A DNA stretch of 64,000 nucleotides from Dimorphilus gyrociliatus (taxonomy: Eukaryota; Animalia; Annelida), in assembly GCA_904063045.1 (NCBI GenBank), contig CAJFCJ010000009.1, positions 2,108,968 through 2,172,967 of the forward strand. The letters run 5' to 3'. A program made the position numbers and the translations under genes. The notes under the pieces were generated by a model. That model had not been told where the DNA came from. It saw nothing but the letters and a program-made list of their open reading frames with translations, and searched no databases. Shown here piece after piece: positions 15,185 through 63,004 of this stretch (the stretch's first letter is position 1; every line of letters begins with the position of its first letter).

Positions 15185-16520
15185 TCATATTTGTAAAGCT
15201 GTCCTTTCAGCAGCAAAAGGATATTGATACTAAAATAGAAAAAGAAAGATATATGTATTTTACAATTTGAATCTTAAAGAAGGAATTTTTAATAAATTAC
15301 TTCGTTATTTATATCCACAAGAGTTCTTGATTGAATATCCGGCGGATAAACCTGGAAATTATAAAATAATATATAGAATATGTATGATTATTTTATTATT
15401 ACTTACACTTTTTAATCCTAAAGGAGATGAAAATGCAGCATTCAAGACAAATTGAACTCCCGATAGTGCTAGAAATATTCAAATTATACTATATAGTATA
15501 AAATAACTTGTATAAATAATACTAACGATGATAAACAGCCGTAGAAGAGCTCGCTTGTTGTAAATCATTCTGTCTCATAGGTAACTCTTCTTTCACATTT
15601 GTAGTAGGCCTAAAATGAGTATTAAAAAAATTATTAAATTATTAAAAAAAATACCAGTATGTAAGTATGTAAGATAATAAAACTTGTTTATATGATTTGT
15701 AAAACAATCAAATGAAACGTAAACGAAATATCCAAGAACTTACAAGCTAGCAGGAAGAGTTGGCGATTGAGTTTGAGTGACTTGTATTGGAGGAAGTTCA
15801 CAAATTTTGAAACATATTGCAACGTTATTTATTTCTCTGGAGGAGATAGTTAACATTTTATAAAAAAGCTATCTCTTTATATAGTTAACTTATTTTTCAA
15901 TTACCCCGCTAATGTATATCCTACAGGAGCGCGTTTACTTTTGGTTAACAGGCAAATGTCGCAGATTGCAGCTGATGTAGCCTCTCTCGGTATAACTTTG
16001 ACACATATTTGTTTCTTTTTTGTAGCTTTTTCCTCTAATTTCAATAAAATAAATGGTGAAATTATATTTAAAAAAGATTATAATATATTATACTTGTATC
16101 CATTGTATATTCTATAATAGAATATCCGTTTGGTGGCCTCTCCCTATCATTTTGAACAGCAATGTCAGCTAAGACCATATTCATTTGACCCTATTTAATT
16201 CAATAATAATTATTCACATGATTAATTTCAATGAAAATGTCTTATTTACAAATCCTGCTTGTTGTTTAGTGATACATAGATGACGCTTAGACTTTTTAAA
16301 AAATCCATCAGGCATCAAATCGCATTCTTCATTTCGATCCGACGAGTAAAACAACTGTTAATTATAATAAGATACAATTATATATTTATTTATATGGTCA
16401 TTATATAGAAAATGTATCTGAAGAAAAAGAAGAAAAGCTACTCACGACATCGTAGTCGGGAGGACATTTTTGCTTATCTTCTATTATACCAATTTTGGTA
16501 ATCGGTAGCCTCTGTTCCAT
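15185..16520 (-). CDS. MVB12: ESCRT-I subunit MVB12 (MABP + UMA domains), multi-exon
   Basis: MEQRLPITKIGIIEDKQKCPPDYDV; CDLMPDGFFKKSKRHLCITK; KKKQICVKVIPREATSAAICDI; ALSGVQFVLN; YQYPFAAERTALQI*. Confidence 0.88.
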
Positions 16521-16960
16521 TTAATTGTTTTCTCTTTTGTTTTATGATAAATGAATTTTTTAAAAGATTTAATTTCAAATTTTTAACGGGATATCTTGTA
16601 AAGCTAGCCGTTAGAAGCCGAATAGCTTACTGGAACAAAAAAATAATATAGATGGAAATCCCAATTGCTATGAGTCACCTCTGTGACGTACTGATGTTAC
16701 CGGAAGTTATAGAAAAATATTAAAAAATAACAAAAATAATATTGTTAAAACTTTGAATTTCAAACAACATTAATGCAACGTACTGAAAAAATGTTTAGTC
16801 TTGTTTTGAAAATTTATATAAAGACAGTTGCTTAAGAATATCTTGTTTTCTGTTTAGTTTTTTTTTAAGGACACCGTATTGTGAAAATGGGAATCACTTA
16901 CGGTTCAAACAAACTGTTAAAAAATTTACTTCTTATCGCTCTAATTGGAATTTATCGACA
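16521..16960. promoter_or_regulatory. Bidirectional promoter MVB12/TTC5
   Basis: Divergent ATGs 440 nt apart; TGACGTA (CRE-like) 16684-16690 and CCGGAAGT (ETS) 16700-16707. Confidence 0.55.
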
Positions 16961-37433: not shown

Positions 37434-39467
37434 TTAGCCCCTCTCAATGATCAAATCGAAATCAACACCTTTATACATAGATATAGGAAAAGTATTACTA
37501 ATTGTATTAGAAGTTTTTATTTCAAACTGTGATGATTGGTCGGAGTTTTTTCTAGATCTTTTATTATCTGCAATAGCTTTCCAAGTTATTAAATTTTTAT
37601 CATTCCCCTTTCTTACATTCGATACTTTTGAAGTTGAACTTGTAGTATTACTATTGTAACTTTTTCGTTCATTATTATACCTTGAAGTTTGTTTTGAGGC
37701 GTCCTTTATTGTTTGTAATGCAGGTGTTATTTGAGTAAATTGATTTTTTTGAGGTTCCTCATCTGGCGTCATTGATATGTTTGTTTGAGATTCTTTTTCT
37801 CTTTGCTTTATTATTAAAACACCATGTTGAAATGGATTTTCTGTTTTATCAGCATATCTTGTTGATGACTCTTTAGTAGTTTCTCTAGTTTCCATTGCAT
37901 TTGAATAAGCTAACAAAAATTTTCTTATGCCCCTTTCAAAGCTTGGTTTAAAAAGGAATTTAGATATAGAAGATAGAGTAAATGATAATAGAATCATAAT
38001 TATTGATATGATAAACCAGGTAGAAGCGTGGAAAGCAAATCTGTCAACCAAATGGTAACAAAACACTTTTTCAATATACCCAAACCAAATTGAAAAGAAC
38101 CACTTTGGGTTAAGTTCTACATCTGAATAGGAGCTATTGGATAAAATCGACGCCAGCCCTTTCAAATCGGAGCAGTTTACATACGGGTTTTTAGAAAATT
38201 CTAAAAATGATTGATTTTTTCCTCTAATGCAATTTATTCCATCCTTTTCAATTGAACAATTATGTTTGTAACAAGGTATTACCCTTTCTTTTCTACTTTG
38301 ATTAATATAGAAACTATTTTCAAGGCTACTATAATCCATTGAAATTACTGGACACACCATACCGTTTAGAAAGTGTGCTAAAAATAATGGAATTAATAAT
38401 AGAATCATTAATTTAGCTGCAAAAATACGATAGATTTCGCTTAAAATAGCAAACGATATTCCAGTATAATGGGAGAACCCTGTTCTATCTATTGGCTGTC
38501 GTTTAGGCTTATAGAATTTCGTTGAAAATGGAATTAATAGTATCATAGTTATAAGATAAAGTAGTCCAAAGGCTATACCTAAACTTATATCTGTGTTATA
38601 CCAGAAATGATTAAACTTCATTTCGAATGCTTCCACAAAATGTGAAACAGTTTTAGTATAAAATAATGACTTTTGTATGTTGTTGTTATTGTTGAAAAAT
38701 GTCCAATTTCTTTCAGATTCCAACAAATTTGTAAACCCTTGAATAGAATTGTTTCTATGGGATAGTGAACTATTATCCATTTGAAAGTTATCAAGAAAAT
38801 TCATTAACGATTGCGATAGGTCTTTATTTAAACTTCTAAATAATTTCGGTTGTTGAACTGCTACTAGAAGAAAGATGACGTTTAGAAATCCTATTAGGCT
38901 TATAAAAATGATAGAAAGGGTTACTAGAGAGAGGAAATATATTTTCTTGTTTCCTGTCAATGATGTTTTAGTTGTACACGAACAAGATGATTCTCTTTCG
39001 TCCATCTCTTCCTTTGCAATTTCAATAAATTCACGTAACTCCTCCTCTGTTAAACTTTTGGCTGTATTGCGAATTTTTTCTTGTATTTTTTTTATATATT
39101 GCCTGTGTAAGCAAATTTTAGAAAGTCTGTTACAGAAAGAACATAATGATTTCATCATTAAGGAGACGATTAAGATAATTAAAAGGAATATTATTGAAAA
39201 GAATGCCCAATCTTGAACAATAATTCTCCACTGTTCTTTCCTCTCATTCTTCCGAAAATTTTCAATTGGGAAATGATCAGGCCAAATGTAACTTAGATAA
39301 GAATTTAACAGTAGTTCAGCATTAGCTGGAGGAGGATTTATGTAATCTAGAGGCCATCTAGTGGCTATCCTAAACCAAATAGGTATGTGATATTGAAAGG
39401 AATAAATCTTGTTCCTTAATCCCATTAAATCGTTCACCAAAGCGATTTGGTGATTAACCGTAAACAT
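37434..39467 (-). CDS. Divergent prominin-like five-TM glycoprotein, 677 aa single ORF
   Basis: Five hydrophobic segments in prominin order, with Cys-rich CSFC after TM1. LMILLLIPLFLAHFLNGMVCP and FCYHLVDRF...FTLSSISKF resemble prominin TM4-LICxP and CxxxxDP-TM5. Many N-x-S/T sequons in both loops. Confidence 0.65.
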   Translation of the reverse strand: MFTVNHQIALVNDLMGLRNKIYSFQYHIPIWFRIATRWPLDYINPPPANAELLLNSYLSYIWPDHFPIENFRKNERKEQWRIIVQDWAFFSIIFLLIILIVSLMMKSLCSFCNRLSKICLHRQYIKKIQEKIRNTAKSLTEEELREFIEIAKEEMDERESSCSCTTKTSLTGNKKIYFLSLVTLSIIFISLIGFLNVIFLLVAVQQPKLFRSLNKDLSQSLMNFLDNFQMDNSSLSHRNNSIQGFTNLLESERNWTFFNNNNNIQKSLFYTKTVSHFVEAFEMKFNHFWYNTDISLGIAFGLLYLITMILLIPFSTKFYKPKRQPIDRTGFSHYTGISFAILSEIYRIFAAKLMILLLIPLFLAHFLNGMVCPVISMDYSSLENSFYINQSRKERVIPCYKHNCSIEKDGINCIRGKNQSFLEFSKNPYVNCSDLKGLASILSNSSYSDVELNPKWFFSIWFGYIEKVFCYHLVDRFAFHASTWFIISIIMILLSFTLSSISKFLFKPSFERGIRKFLLAYSNAMETRETTKESSTRYADKTENPFQHGVLIIKQREKESQTNISMTPDEEPQKNQFTQITPALQTIKDASKQTSRYNNERKSYNSNTTSSTSKVSNVRKGNDKNLITWKAIADNKRSRKNSDQSSQFEIKTSNTISNTFPISMYKGVDFDLIIERG

Positions 39468-46688: not shown

Positions 46689-49600
46689 ATGCAATTAAAG
46701 CATCTGAAAACATTACAAGTCCCTCAAGTACGTAGATGTTATGTTTTTGTTTAAAATATGTACATTTGTTTATAAGTGTATTGTTGTATCTATACGAAAT
46801 ATTTTTGAAATAGGAGGGAGCAGCAAAGATATCTGCTGTGGCCTGGTCGCCTAATAATGCTAAATTCGCCGTTTGTACATCTGATAGAGTTGTCATCTTA
46901 TTTGATGAAAATGGAGAAAAGAGAGATAAATTTGCTACAAAGCCGGTTGACGCGAAATATGGTAAAAAGAGCTATACAGTCAAAGGTCTGGCGTTTTCGC
47001 CAGATTCAACAAAGATAGCCGTTGCCCAAACTGACAACATCATTTTTGTTTATAAAATCGGTGAAGACTGGGGAGAGAAGAAGGTAATCTGTAATAAATT
47101 CATTCAACAATGCGCTGTCACTTGCCTAGTTTGGCCAGTTGATTCACAAAATATTGTGTTTGGCTGCTCTGATGGTAAGGTTAGAATGGGTAATACAAAG
47201 ACAAACAAGTCGAATACTCTCTATAATACTGATTCTTACGTTGTATCTTTAACTACTAACATTAGTGGTAAAGGGATACTATCAGGCCATGCGGATGGAT
47301 CAATAGTAAGATTCTTTACAGAAAATGATGATTCAGGAGAACCCCAAGGAAAAGTTTGTAAACACGCTTGCCCTCCTTACGCTTTAGCCTGGTCCACTAA
47401 CTCTATTATAGCGGCCGGGTGTGACAAAAGAATAGTTGCGTATGAAAAAGGAGGAAGAGTTCTGCAGCAATTCGATTATTCTAAAGACGATGACGAACAT
47501 GAATTTACTTGTGCAGTTTGTTCACCCAGCGGTCAATCTGTGGTTGTTGGTAGTTTTGACAGGCTAAGAGTATTGAATTGGTCTCCAAGGCGCTCAATGT
47601 GGGATGAAGCCAAGGCGAAAGAAATTCCAAATCTCTACACTATAACCGCATTAGCATGGAAAAAAGATGGTTCAAAAGTTAACGCAGGAACACTTTGCGG
47701 TGGAGTTGAACTTTTTGATTGTTGCTTGAGAAGAGCAATCTATAAAAATAAGTTTGAAATCACTTATGTTGGAGTATCACAAGTAATAGTCAAAAACATA
47801 TCTTCCACTGCAAGAGTCGTTCTAAAATCCTTCTATGGTTATGAGATAGACGAAGTTAAAATTCTTGGAAATGATAGATATTTGGTTGCCCATACAACTG
47901 AAACATTAATGCTTGGAGATATGTCAACTGCAAAATTATCTGAAGTTCCGTGGCATTCCGGTAGTGCCAACGAAAAATTCTATTTTGAAAATGACAATGT
48001 GTGTCTTGTTTTCAATGCTGGCGAGCTCTCTCTGATAGAATATGGATCAAATGAAATACTAGGTTGTGTTAGAACTGAATTTATGAATCCTCATTTGATA
48101 TCTGTACGGATAAATGAAAGAAAACAAAGAGGAGTTGACGATAATAAGAAGATGGCTTATTTAATAGATTTGAAAACAGTTGCAATAATGGACCTTTGCT
48201 CAGCAGTGAACATAGCTGAAGTTCCTCATGACTCCAAAATTGATTGGCTTGAGCTAAATGAAACAGGAAGAATCTTATTATTTAGGGATAAACGTTTAAA
48301 ATTACATATGTTTGACATTGATAATGGTACAACCACCACAATACTCGATTACTGTGTTTATGTTCAATGGGTAGCAGGAAGTGATGTAATCGTCGCTCAG
48401 GGAAGAAATACGTTATGCGTTTGGTATAATGTAGATGCTCCAGAGAGAGTTACAAACTGGCCCATCAAAGGAGATGTCACAGATATTGAAAGAACAGACG
48501 GGAAGACTGAAGTTCTAGTTCATGAAGGAGTAACATCTGTGGCATACGCTCTGGACGAAGGATTAATAGAATTCGGTACGGCTATTGATGATGGAGACTA
48601 TGCAAGAGCAGTAGCCTTTTTGGAAACTCTTGAAATGTCACCAGAAACTGAAGCAATGTGGAAAACTCTAAGTAAATTAGCGCTAGAGCATGAAGCTCTC
48701 CACATTGCTGAGCGTTGCTACGCTGCTTTGGGTGATGTTTCAAAAGCTCGTTATTTGAAAACTACTAGACAATATGCTAACAAAGCTGCCGAAACACTTG
48801 GTGGTACAGGAACAGATCACTACAAAGTAAAGGCCAGACTAGCAGTATTAGAAAAGAACTTAGCAGCAGCTCAAGCCGCCTATCTAGAACAGAATCAAGT
48901 AGATGAAGCTTTGGAAATGTACCAAGAACTTCACAAATGGGAGGATGCCCTAGCCATTGCAAGGGCTAAAAATCATCCTGAATTAGAAAGTTTGAAGAAA
49001 AACTATTATCAGTGGTTACTGGATACGTCTCAAGAAGGTCGCGCAGGCCAGTTAAAAGAAAAGGAAAATGACCCTGGTGCGGCTGTAAATCTATATCTGA
49101 AAGCAGGAATGCCCGCCCGAGCTGCAAGAGTTGTGGTATCAAATGACGATTTACTGGGTTCGTCCGAACTGGTGTCAAGAGTTGCAGGTGCCTTAACAAG
49201 AGCAGAATGTTACGAAAGAGCTGGAGATTTGTTTGAAAGGACAAGAGAATATAAACAAGCTATGGAATGCTATAAAAAAGGAGAATCTTGGAACAGGGCT
49301 GTTGAATTAGCACGTCATGCCTTTCCTGATAGTGTCGTTTCTCTAGAGAAATCTTGGGGAGATCATTTGTGTCAACTGAAACAACTTGATGCTGCTATTA
49401 ACCACTATATAGAAGCTGGAGAAATTTTAAAGGCAGCCGAAGCAGCTATTGCGTCTCGTCAGTGGAAGAAAGCTGTCCAAATATTAGAACTACAAGATGA
49501 AAGCGTCGCTCAGCCATTCTATAAACAAATTGCAGAACATTACGCTAAGATTGGAGAGCATGAGCATGCTGAAGAGTACTTTGTGAAAGCAGCAGCCACA

Positions 49601-52027
49601 GAAGATGCGATTTCCATGTACAACGCTGCCGGTAAGTGGGAGGCGGCTCATCGTTTGGCATCTACGTTTATGAAACCAGAAGAAGTTAGCACACTCTATA
49701 TCAATCAAGCTAAGGTATTGGAGAGTCAGGATAAATACAGAGATGCAGAACGTCTATATATAACCGTTGATGAGCCTGATTTGGCTATCACAATGTACAA
49801 AAAATTGAGAATGTTTAACGACATGATACGCTTAGTCAAAGCTCATAGACCTGAATTACTTCCAATGACTCACACCCATCTTGGTAAGCAATTCGAGGAA
49901 GAAGGGCAACTACGTCAAGCCGAACAACACTATGTGGCCGCTGGAGAGTGGAAGTCGGCAATAAATATGTATAGAGTAAAAGAATCTTGGGACGAAGCTC
50001 ATAGAGTTGCACGATCTCACGGTGGGCCAACTGCTGCTAAACAAGTAGCTTACTTGTGGGCGAAATCAGTTGGTGGAGATGCAGCTGTAAAACTTTTAAC
50101 AAGATTCGGCTTGCTAGAGGCTGCGATAGATTACGCAACTGAAAACTGCGCTTTTGATTTTGCTTTCGAGTTAGCAAAGTCTGCAATGAAGCAGAAGTTG
50201 CCCGAAATCTACTTGAAGCACGCCATGTTTTTAGAGGACGAGGGTAAATTTGCTGAAGCTGAAAAGGCGTTTATAACTGCTTCGAAAGCTAAAGAAGCTG
50301 TTCTTATGTATGTACACAATCAAGATTGGGATTCTGCTCAAAGAGTTGCTGAAGAACACGATCCAGATTCCGTTTCTGATGTCTTCGTTGGTCAGGCTAG
50401 ACACAGCTTTGACCAAAAAGACTATCAGAAGGCAGAAGGTTTCTTATTAAGAGCACAAAGACCTGAATTAGCCATTCGATATTATAAAGACGTCGGAATG
50501 TGGCAAGATGCACTTAGGGTATGCAAAGAATACATACCGCATAAATTGCAAGCTTTGCAGGACGAATACGACAGAACAGTTATGGAGCAATCAACGAAAG
50601 GTATGGAAACTTTAAGCAAACAAGCTAAACAATGGGAATCTAGTGGAGAGTATGAAAGAGCAGTTGAATGTTATTTGAAGTTTGATCAGAGCATCACACC
50701 AGATTTAAACATTCTTGAAAAAGCCTGGACTAGAGCTGCAACTTTGGCCTTAAAATTTCTAAAAGCTGCAAAATCCTCTGAGGTGGTTAACATTGTTGGA
50801 CCTCGCTTAGCTAAAATTGATAAACATTTAGCGGCAGCAGAATTATACGTTGCTGCAGATAAAGGCAAAGATGCGGTTGAGGTACTAATGGAAGGAGAAC
50901 ACTGGAATAAGGCAAAACATATCGCAAAAGAGCACGAGCCAAAAATGGAAGAGTTGGTTGATCAAAGATATAAGCAATTCTTAAAATCATCTGGTAAAGC
51001 GGATGCTTTGGCTGGAGTCGACGTTGTGGCAGCTCTTGATATGTATGTTGAAAAAGGTGAATGGGATAGATGCATTGCTACAGCTGCTCAGAATGGAAAC
51101 AATAAACTTCTGCATAAATACGTTGCCCAATACGCTGCTAAACTTCTTAAAGGTGGACAAGCTGCCAAAGCTCTGAATCTTTATGTTGAGCATGGTGCCC
51201 CGCCTGCTCAACAAAATTTTAATATTTACAAAAAGATCGCCCTTGATTTATTCCAAGCCAGAGATATGAATACGGCTGACGCCTATCAAATTTGGGCCGA
51301 CTTACGTAATGTTCTAAAAGATATTGTTGAAGCTCTAGAAAATATGGGCGGTGAAGATTCAGCTAATCTTAGTTCTCTCTTAAAGATTGCCCACTATTAC
51401 GCAACTCGTTCAGCAGCATTAGGTCATAAATCTTTGGATACTTTAGCCGCTAAACTCTCAATCTCCCTTCTAAGACACACGGATCTCGTTCCCGCTGATA
51501 AAGCATTCTGGGAGGCCGGTCAAGCATGTAGACAAATTGGTTGGGAAGCGATGGGTTTTGTATTCCTTAATCGTTATCTGGACTTGGTGGAAGCAATAGA
51601 AGATGGTTCCCTCGATACTCTGGATCATAGTGATTTCCAAAATACAGATATACCTTATGAAATCCCTCTGCCCGAAAGATTATTTGTCGGCGAATCTGAA
51701 CACGAAGAGATAAAAGAATGGGTTCTAGCAATTTCTCTAGATCAACGAGTCACTCACGAATTACCTTGCGACGAAAGAGATACATATGAAGGGTCTCTTA
51801 TTTCAGTCAATGGTAAGAAATATCCACCGTGCCTCATTTCAGGTTATCCCGTCTATAAAAATCCTATGGAATTTAAACGCGAAGGGTTTTATGCCAACAA
51901 AGATGAATGGAATAAATTCTTAATGGCAACGAAAGTATCACACTCAGCATCTTGTCAAGACGTTCTGAAATTTATTGGAAGTTGGGCTGGAGCAACTTCA
52001 ACACCATCATTTAATTTCCAGCAATAA
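46689..52027 (+). CDS. IFT172: Intraflagellar transport protein 172, 2 exons (46689-46727, 46814-52027)
   Basis: [13 protein letters not shown]|[22 protein letters not shown]...RDKFATKP; WD40 beta-propellers followed by a TPR/alpha-solenoid; single 86-nt GT-AG intron. The ORF track's GTG start is not the true start. Confidence 0.97.
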
Positions 52028-59752: not shown

Positions 59753-62700
59753 TTAGTTTCCATGTTTATTCTTAAAATAAAAACTCATAATAGATTTAGT
59801 TTGCAAAAACAAATATAAAGGTAAAAACAGTAGGAGAAGAGTAAATGTAATTAGTATTATGTTGAAAGCTGTTGGTATTATTTCAATACCGAATCCGTGT
59901 AATCTTAATACAAATTCAGTTTTAAATAAACACTTCTTATTGGTATCAATTTCATTAGAAAATCTAATTAAGAAATAATAGGTTGGAGGTCTTAAAATTT
60001 TGTCAGGGAGAAGATTAAAACATGGAGAATTCTCGTTACAAAACCACAAAAAGTCGTTATTCCTATTATTATATACTATACTATCTTTTTCAGCGTATAT
60101 TCTTAATATCTTGTTCTCATTCTTTCCATTTATCCTTTCTAAAGTTACATTATCGAAGTGGCGAATATTCTCTAAGTAATTGGCACCACCACCTATCAAT
60201 TCCAGAGTATAGTTACCCTGATATATTGTCTTATTATCAGTAATCCAATCGTAAATTGTGAACATGGGATAGAATCTATCATTTTTGTAGAAACACGGTA
60301 TTCCATCATTACTCCACCAGCATCCTTTAGCCTTTTTCTGCAGTCTTCTCCATAGCTCTTTTCTACTCATTTCTGGATCAAAATATATTGATAGCGAATT
60401 TGGACAGCCTAAGTAAACAGTTAATATATGCATTGGCCTCGTTTTTATCCAGTTTTTCTGACATGTTTTAAAAGGACACAATAGCTTTAACTCTACTGGA
60501 ATAAAATTTTTATCCCAAGTATCGCTTGAACTTTTCATAAGCCTCTTATTAATAAGTGATATTTGAAAGGTTATTGAAGAGTTGTACCAGTTTACATTTC
60601 TATTTACTGTAATTTCTAAAGAGCTGCTTCTTTCAAGCGTTCTTACTGACAAATGAGCTGATTCAAATGCCCAAGCGTCTAGCAGGGGCTCTACTACTAT
60701 AGAGAATGAAAATGTTTCACCGTAATCAATGTGAATGTCGGTGGGAATTTCTGATGACCATGTTTTAGATAAATCCAGGTTTTCTAGCCTGACCGAATCT
60801 GACCACGGGCTAGAATGGGTCAGGGCATCCTTCATATTCTCTTGCCATTCATCGATCAAATTAAGACTATTTCGATTTAAATAGGAACCGTAGAAAGACG
60901 AGTCGTAATCTCGAATGATATGGCGAATAAGTATATTTAAAGCTTGAACTGAAGATATTGATTTTAGGGAACTTTTTGAATTAGTCTGATTGTCGAAATA
61001 GTTCATATTATCAATTATCAAACGAACTTCTCTTGTATACTTTCGTAAGCTTTCGAAATAATATAGGAACTGAATAGGATATGGATTATCATAAATGAAT
61101 GAAGAGATACGCTCAAATTCAACTTTTACTCTCATGATTTCTTTACCCTTGACGATAAGCATAAGCTCACCATCTTCGTCAAGAAGACCACCGAGAATTG
61201 TATATCCTTTTATAGGATCTTGATTATCGAACGCCTTATTCCAATATATCGATGGATAAAATTGAACTAAATTTCCTGTAATCTCTTTAAACAGTAGTCT
61301 ACCGTCCTTTGTTACAAGATAAACACGACTAAATCGATCTAAAATTACATCAATTACCGCTTCATTCGTTAGAATTTTCTCGTCACCATTGATACCTTCT
61401 ATAGAGATGACCTTGGATCCGAGAAGATAATAACAAGGCGGATTAAATGATACGAAAGGTGAATGTGCGATACCTTTAAAATCACCTTGTGATCTAATCT
61501 CTCTTATGTAATTTTCTGTTTCTAAGCTACGTTTCACTACCCTATATTTTTGTTTAGTTCTTGTTAATAAAAGCATCTCTAAGCTATTTGATGGTAAAAT
61601 ACGAACATCTATAATATGACACGATTCATTGCAGACTCTCTTCAGTTCTAGCCATCTCTTATTTTCTTTTAACCAAATTTTTTCAGATGTAAAGCCAACA
61701 ACATTGATTTTATTGACGGATGGCACATGCAGTGGTGTAGCTCTAAGATGCTTTGGAGATATATCCCTTAAATAGCTTTTATCTGATATTGTTTTATCAA
61801 TGTTTTCGTCGTATGGAAGCTTGTACATATACAATTTATATAGGCCAGCGTTTGTTGCTAAAAGTAAACTATCGCCTAAAGATAGAGCGTCAAATAGCTC
61901 TATTTTAGAAGTGTTATAATGGAATTTCTTAAGGGATGCCCAATTGAAAAGGACAACTTGAAAAGTTCTAAAGTGGTCAATAGAAACTATAAGTTTTCCC
62001 TCTTGAGAGAGAATAAGTTCAACTCCGCCTCTTCCCCAAATATAATTGATTCTTTTAGGAGATGTAAAGTCATCTTTAGATAAATCCGTACTGCTTAGCC
62101 AACTGGGTAAAACTCTACCAGATATTTTATAGTGATATAAAGATAATAGATGATAGGATGAATCTTCTTTAATTGTAGTAGTTAAACTTTTCATTTTAAC
62201 AGCTATGGCAATGCACCTGAAAGAGTTTCATATACTGTATTTACATAGAGTATATAGATAATGTTTGCTAATTTTTGCGATATTACTTATTTACGACAAT
62301 AAAAAACAGTTAATATTATTAAGTTAAAATCTATTTTTATACTTTCTAAAGAGAAGAAAAAGCTTACTGTGTAGAAGCTATGAATGGTACAGGCGTTATC
62401 CATAATGAATTTTTTAACGAATTATCCAAAGAAACTAATGAGGATTGTAGAATTATTGTAAAGTGAGATACTCTCTTATTAAAATTCTCATGGGAGCGAC
62501 ACATTGGTTTCATCTCAACAATTGGATTTAATTCATTAATCCTATCTTGCCATCTTTCTACCTGTGAGATTTTATTAATTATATACAACTTTATCAAGCA
62601 TGAATAATTAGGTAATTTCAAATTCTATTGATATAAATTTACATAAATGCCACGCTCTAAACAAGTCAAATCATGCTTTAAAGTAATAACAAATTGATTA

Positions 62701-63004
62701 AATATGGCTGGATTTATAAAGTACTTTTTTTTTTGTAGCGTTTAATTAGCCTCTATTTATTTATAGATGTTATTACTTTAACGTATAAAGGGCAGTAGGT
62801 AAACATTCCAGTTCCTTTGAATGGTGAAAACCTTTGAAAATCCTTTAATTTTCCAGTAACGTTAACAGGACAAGAAGAGGCAGAAATATTCTGCCCAGCG
62901 AACTGTTGATCTAAAATAAACATTGATACTTTCCACAAGCATCTCTTAGCTACTGCATATCTTAAGCAAAACAGTATTATCAATGGGAATTGTATCATTG
63001 CCAT
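59753..63004 (-). CDS. CATSPERG: CatSper auxiliary subunit gamma-like, 3 exons (63004-62777, 62561-62368, 62216-59753), about 961 aa
   Basis: Signal peptide then CLWKV; phases 0 and 2 join in frame. The C-terminal region PCFYKNDRFYPMFTIYDWIT...YQGNYTLELIGGG...WFCNENSPCF...PTYYFLIRFSN...CLFKTEFVLRLHGF plus one TM matches the recalled CatSper-gamma signature (PCFLFRDIFYPFF...FQGSYVLLVVGGG...WLCLENAPC...LHIHGL). Confidence 0.8.

Follow-up and report, generated by a model that had tools for sequence, protein, structure and literature searches.

The closest described counterpart of the gene reported here is mouse CATSPERG2 (7EEB chain F), the gamma chain of the mouse CatSpermasome, in which a beta-propeller, an Ig-like domain and a stem are followed by one membrane helix. 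A second point of reference is the sperm module of sea urchins, in which the CatSper channel is combined with the exchanger SLC9C1. Sea urchins shed their sperm into sea water. Among protostomes, Brachiopoda are recorded as having CatSper along with SLC9C1 and soluble adenylyl cyclase; arthropods are heterogeneous, some lacking CatSper, and in molluscs none was found (Romero and Nishigaki, PMC6660944). CatSper1 is tabulated for the annelid Lamellibrachia satsuma, the springtail Orchesella cincta and Lingula anatina (PMC13674862, Table 1, 2026), and the male-biased genes of another annelid, Platynereis, are enriched for ‘CatSper complex’ (PMC11195272). Here we describe a gene at positions 59753-63004 of a 64,000-nucleotide stretch of annelid DNA (the window, in what follows), most likely from Dimorphilus gyrociliatus. 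The gene is very probably the CATSPERG orthologue, present in single copy, and would encode the gamma auxiliary subunit of CatSper, the calcium channel of sperm. An earlier note on this DNA had inferred a protostome host, correctly, as D. gyrociliatus is an annelid and annelids are protostomes; it had also described CatSper as long regarded as lost from most protostomes, and a gamma gene in one of them as notable. That premise is outdated, with CatSper recorded in a brachiopod, a springtail and annelids, so the gene is not a surprise, and a gamma homologue from the annelid Owenia fusiformis had already been deposited.

The gene lies on the minus strand of an AT-rich window (about 31% G+C) and runs from a start codon at 63004 to a stop codon at 59753-59755. 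Its exons, read from the sequence, are three and together encode 961 amino acids (aa) in an intact frame:

62777..63004, minus strand: exon 1, 76 aa; start codon, then a hydrophobic segment resembling a signal peptide, and the first part of the N-terminal domain; phase 0; donor GTAATA
62368..62561, minus strand: exon 2, 64 aa plus 2 nt; remainder of the N-terminal domain; donor GTAAGC
59753..62216, minus strand: exon 3, 1 nt plus 820 aa plus stop; predicted beta-propeller, then the Ig-like and stem domains, the membrane helix and a short cytoplasmic tail

The splice sites around exons 1 and 2 are standard, and an uninterrupted open frame of 824 codons ends at 59753. The program-made list of open reading frames (ORFs) gives only an 813-aa part of the gene, from an internal ATG at 62194; the earlier note was therefore right that the list had missed part of it, and had placed the intact 961-aa frame at exactly these coordinates. 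In the analyses below the exons were searched separately, and structure was predicted for the 820-aa product of exon 3.

Sequence comparison identified the protein as a homologue of CATSPERG. The Pfam family PF22846 (CATSPERG_C) matched over profile positions 5-183 of 202 with 80.6 bits against a cut-off of 27.6 (E 1.8e-22), and this was the only CATSPERG_C match in the 77.9-Mb genome; PF22851 (CATSPERG_Ig-like) stayed under its cut-off at 13.5 bits (E 0.071). Mouse CATSPERG2 chains were the only credible sequence matches among all solved structures (7EEB_F, E 9.4e-24; 9UBW_F, E 1e-23), with an alignment over ORF residues 519-794 that reaches the membrane helix and enters it. A word-indexed protein search gave one relative only, and an exhaustive HMMER search, run over 1.84 billion representatives, was required to reveal the family, returning 131 relatives. 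The named vertebrate relatives are all CATSPERG (from an anchovy, the coelacanth, turtles, a frog, rays and a chimaera), and CATSPERG is also the name of the invertebrate ones, from amphioxus, two hemichordates, a crinoid and Nematostella; the same scan found gamma-like proteins in chytrid fungi, Carpediemonas, Aduncisulcus and Pigoraptor. Outside one close relative, the sequence alignment to these 131 proteins reaches only the last ~330 residues, and neither exon 1 nor exon 2 gave a credible match when searched against all collected relatives.

The structure prediction carried the comparison further towards the N-terminus. An AlphaFold2 (AF2) model of the exon 3 product, made from a 47-sequence alignment, had a mean predicted local distance difference test score (pLDDT) of 73.2 and a predicted template modelling score (pTM) of 0.60. 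Its top Foldseek match was mouse CATSPERG2 (7eeb_F; E 2.3e-37; template modelling score 0.65 on the query), and a VIA structural alignment placed model residues 30-784 on residues 210-1065 of this chain, with 671 residues aligned at a root-mean-square deviation of 5.3 Å and a Z of 28.9. Mouse residues before 210 would, on this model, correspond to worm exons 1 and 2. The earlier note had named the gene as CatSper-gamma-like and proposed a comparison with the mouse CatSpermasome chain, which proved to be the best match both by sequence and by structure, ahead of epsilon, beta and delta.

Within the exon 3 product we distinguish the following parts:

61088..62110, minus strand: predicted beta-propeller; residues ~36-376 of the exon 3 product, all-beta, pLDDT mostly 70-90
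60536..60751, minus strand: Ig-like domain; weak, sub-cut-off match to Pfam CATSPERG_Ig-like, covered by the sequence and structure alignments to CATSPERG2
59804..60322, minus strand: C-terminal (stem) domain of CATSPERG, continuing into the membrane helix; Pfam PF22846
59804..59881, minus strand: the one transmembrane helix, at residues 779-804 of the exon 3 product; a tail of 16 aa comes after it

The whole protein most likely consists of a signal peptide, a small N-terminal domain (exons 1 and 2), a predicted propeller of seven-bladed type, an Ig-like domain and a stem, with one membrane helix and a tail that is very short. The sequence itself shows a hydrophobic stretch behind the start codon, with small residues next to it, which makes a signal-peptide-like N-terminus. 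At the other end, 16 aa before the stop, is a 26-residue hydrophobic run that aligns with the membrane helix region of CATSPERG2, and the AF2 model has a helix at residues 779-819 of the exon 3 product. The hydrophobic start and the C-terminal helix give the protein the type I membrane topology expected of CATSPERG, and agree with the signal peptide and C-terminal transmembrane segment noted previously. In the Ig-like region, where the model has strands in a beta-sandwich-like run at residues 493-556 of the exon 3 product, CATSPERG2 aligns with the worm protein both in sequence, starting at ORF residue 519, and in structure, inside model residues 30-784. The propeller region aligns with WD40-type propellers at Z ~19-20 and lies in the full-length match to 7eeb_F, in a prediction made from a shallow alignment. 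Pfam CATSPERG_beta-prop (PF15064) is silent on the gene’s own predicted propeller region, and this N-terminal part of the exon 3 product is predicted from the model to be the propeller of a gamma-type subunit.

With mouse CATSPERG2 the worm protein shares the order of propeller (predicted in the worm), Ig-like domain, stem and one membrane helix, and a sequence match of E 9.4e-24 over its last 275 residues. It differs in being shorter (961 aa versus ~1145 aa), in having only ~17% identity across the structural alignment, in an N-terminal domain (~140 aa) that is without detectable sequence similarity, and in a cytoplasmic tail of 16 aa. The O. fusiformis protein (CAH1793290.1, deposited as ‘unnamed protein product’) matches over the Ig-like, stem and membrane regions (E 1.2e-24), so that gamma among annelids is not confined to dinophilids; it is unlike the D. 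gyrociliatus protein in its length of 1593 aa, so that the protein is truly longer or its gene model is a fusion, and in its identity of ~27%.

Candidates for the partners of gamma co-occur in the genome (G000, with contigs numbered C1 onwards). The genome’s 148 Ion_trans matches were screened for calcium-type pore motifs and the candidates then compared with solved structures; those for the auxiliary subunits came from Pfam C-terminal families. The candidates are:

C1:118479-119111: CatSper2; pore motif TLDQW; best solved match CatSper2, E 1.7e-40
C7:3829235-3829822: CatSper3; pore motif SVDGW; CatSper3 at 139 bits in one repeat, the best single-repeat match
C20:1172332-1172946: CatSper4; pore motif NQDGW; best match CatSper4, E 1.7e-40, with an alignment that extends into the C-terminal region
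near C19:1225300-1226600: CatSper1 candidate; two consecutive exons; pore motif TLDDW; CatSper1 top for both
C14:946777-947617: beta; CATSPERB_C matches three collinear exons
C2:1687748-1688350: delta/epsilon type; CATSPERD-E_C match; solved relatives delta and epsilon only
C19:2151365-2152026: delta/epsilon type; CATSPERD-E_C match; solved relatives delta and epsilon only
C6:2720433-2721569, plus strand, in the locus 2720298-2723500 (L112:1366-2859): SLC9C1 candidate; Na+/H+ exchanger ORF

The genome search that the earlier note had proposed gave candidates for CatSper1 to CatSper4, beta and SLC9C1, and for delta and epsilon two loci of joint type. Among solved structures, the SLC9C1 candidate is nearest to the sperm-specific exchanger of the sea urchin (E 8e-39; the next exchanger reaches 5e-23), and 1.65 kb downstream of it, with no change of strand, there is a cyclic-nucleotide-binding match. 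A further two long ORFs, both matched weakly by Ion_trans, were considered as SLC9C1 and ruled out, one being polycystin-1-like and the other having an ion-transport domain only. These results support a gamma subunit that belongs to a complete-looking CatSper set, its partners being candidates. The worm in this respect resembles the sea urchin, with candidates for pore and auxiliary subunits and an SLC9C1 candidate nearest to the urchin exchanger.

At another locus (G000:C15:1112977-1119408, plus strand), one strand has, inside 6.5 kb, four cyclic-nucleotide-binding matches in alternation with three ion-transport matches. We take this layout to be that of the four-repeat K+-selective cyclic-nucleotide-gated channel (tetraKCNG/CNGK) of sea urchin sperm, for which the locus is a candidate.

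Several points weigh against a CATSPERG orthologue working within such a channel. Over the N-terminal 650 aa no sequence similarity can be detected except to dinophilid worms, and the assignment of this part to gamma comes from a model of moderate confidence (pLDDT 73, pTM 0.60), in a region where the alignment is thin. Among the partners, the CatSper1 candidate is the weakest, with matches at the level of exons only (E 4e-8 and 4e-11), and the loci on C2 and C19 are candidates graded only as delta/epsilon-type, neither being assigned to one subunit. That the gene is expressed in sperm, that its product assembles with the channel and what it does there are things that we infer by analogy.

On the pattern of the mouse CatSpermasome, gamma would have its membrane helix next to the voltage sensor of one of the pore subunits, and its extracellular part would, with beta, delta and epsilon, make up a canopy over the four-subunit pore, a canopy that would be needed for channel assembly and for ordered placement in the flagellar membrane. 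The pathway is likely to be that of sea urchin sperm, with alkalinisation by SLC9C1 opening CatSper and the resulting calcium entry altering the flagellar beat; such alkalinisation-triggered calcium entry would be expected because candidates for SLC9C1 and the CatSper partners are present. The worm departs from the sea urchin in the fate of its sperm, which dwarf males inject under the female epidermis and which are stored until egg development (PMC5101659). Channel opening is therefore likely to depend on other cues than in the sea urchin, and it is our speculation that a switch that wakes stored sperm would be useful.

As the animal moves by ciliary bands (PMC5101659), a CatSper complex including gamma might act in somatic motile cilia, instead of or besides sperm. 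We consider this improbable: CatSper is sperm-specific wherever it has been studied, the ‘CatSper complex’ genes of Platynereis are male-biased (PMC11195272), and SLC9C1, also regarded as sperm-specific, co-occurs in the genome as a candidate. A role of the gamma gene in sperm remains the preferred reading.

The gene is intact and under constraint. A close relative at 55% identity was found in a related worm (four contigs, L002-L005, from public sequencing runs), with three exons and with intron positions and phases all as in the D. gyrociliatus gene. Downstream of it lie an FNIP gene and then a short-chain dehydrogenase; the FNIP neighbour was confirmed in the window too. Exon 1 is ~80% identical in nucleotides between the two worms, its donor position unchanged, and the boundaries and phase of exon 2 are unchanged in L002. 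In exon 3, non-synonymous and synonymous divergence (dN 0.30; dS 1.43, near saturation) stand in a ratio of ~0.2, and the stem and membrane region is the best conserved, at 72-76% identity. The bulk of both introns cannot be aligned between the worms, yet the 2.4-kb frame is open in both.

In a genome this strongly compacted, and for a channel lost many times among animals (PMC6660944), one might suspect a decaying relic, either a pseudogene or a gene released from selection. That is very unlikely here, as the 2.46-kb exon is uninterrupted in both worms though their introns no longer align, dN/dS is ~0.2, splice sites and phases are conserved, and six nearly invariant stem-domain cysteines of the family are retained (C604, C632, C641, C726, C732 and C762).

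A different pattern was seen at residues 148 and 377 of the exon 3 product (window 61770-61772 and 61083-61085). These fall in columns that are Cys in 43-44 of the 47 family members, in a comparison that depends on the MAFFT alignment of a divergent region, and are Tyr and Asn in D. gyrociliatus and Cys and Asn in the related worm. If the two residues pair elsewhere as a disulfide, the sequences suggest that a nearly invariant cysteine pair was lost stepwise in this lineage.

A constrained gene of this fold could be a mislabelled beta, delta or epsilon paralogue, since the plan of propeller, Ig-like domain, stem and membrane helix is common to all four subunits and the exon 3 model also matches the other three significantly: after gamma, Foldseek ranked epsilon (4.7e-22), then beta and delta, and CATSPERE, CATSPERB and CATSPERD resemble it in overall fold (7eeb_H, 9ubw_E and 7eeb_G, at E 5e-22 to 2e-18). 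These matches are, however, weaker than that to gamma, whose VIA score of 28.9 leads by a clear margin over beta (Z 21.0) and over unrelated WD40 propellers (~20). Of the gamma, beta, delta and epsilon Pfam models, the gamma-specific one alone matches the protein; the sequence search of solved structures found gamma and no other CatSper chain; and the C-terminal Pfam domains of beta and delta/epsilon sit at separate loci, on C14, C2 and C19. The chance of a mislabelled paralogue is accordingly minimal, and the gene is nearer to gamma than to beta, delta or epsilon.

The earlier note had left two alternatives, a full complex or an orphan gamma with a new role after loss of the rest of the complex in this lineage; the first is supported and the second is rejected as hardly credible, since candidates for the four pore subunits, beta and two delta/epsilon-type loci were each recovered by a best match to a CatSper chain or a Pfam match over cut-off, and the one point in its favour, that the Pfam propeller models for delta (PF15020) and gamma (PF15064) find no match in the genome, is uninformative on absence because those models miss the gamma gene itself.

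For this gamma gene, then, the main gain is one of annotation: a name for a gene whose large N-terminal part escapes sequence models. A CatSper set that looks complete has been retained, with SLC9C1, as candidates in the compact genome of Dimorphilus, which adds one well-assembled, culturable protostome to the short list of animals for CatSper study beyond deuterostomes and cnidarians. The picture of CatSper evolution is unchanged, patchy retention among protostomes, annelids included, having already been published.

Intron 1 contains a block of ~105 nt (62590-62696, minus strand) that is ~85% identical between the two worms within intron that is otherwise unalignable. Two parts can be told apart in it:

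62643..62675, minus strand: candidate cassette microexon, 33 nt; 11 aa, phase 0 to 0; acceptor with pyrimidine tract and GTAAAT donor, both conserved in L002
62590..62642, minus strand: conserved intronic stretch, 53 nt, directly downstream of the candidate microexon; ~89% identical to L002; conserved in-frame TAG

The putative 33-nt microexon resembles a cassette microexon. It keeps the frame, and four of the six codons that differ from the related worm are synonymous; as its splice sites are good and the frame is kept, the protein may be 972 aa long in some or all transcripts. We ruled out an RNA gene for this block, which had no Rfam match, no covarying pairs and folding no better than shuffles (z 0.41), and plus-strand coding, by inspection, as stops occur in all three frames.

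A broader proposal, which we hold tentatively and regard as somewhat doubtful, is that the lineage has kept the whole sea-urchin-type set (eight large CatSper subunits, SLC9C1 and the four-repeat cyclic-nucleotide-gated channel) despite a genome among the smallest of any animal and the injection and storage of sperm, and that a conserved, regulated 33-nt microexon in the N-terminal domain of gamma and the loss of the cysteine pair are lineage-specific changes to the canopy.

Other channel-like frames were met elsewhere in the genome. One of them, polycystin-1-like, is a single open frame of 1311 aa that contains PLAT, polycystin and PKD-channel domains (G000:C95:167150-171082, plus strand; L106:1651-5583), and a similar frame of 1354 aa, partly N-masked, lies on C183. 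Near-identical open frames of ~225-241 aa, with a weak ion-transport match (41-46 bits), are present in at least six copies over three contigs:

G000:C45:4268-4840: amplified frame, one copy
G000:C246:5786-6355 and 16359-16931: amplified frame, two copies
G000:C5:136515-137078, 146022-146591 and 157872-158441: amplified frame, three copies

These frames are a recently amplified channel-like gene family.

Within the window, a 677-aa ORF at 37434-39467 (minus strand) matched no Pfam family at E 0.001. At 46838-52027 (plus strand), ~8 kb from the gamma gene, a 1729-aa uninterrupted frame has WD40 propellers followed by TPR domains of intraflagellar-transport type, and is an intronless intraflagellar-transport-like protein gene.

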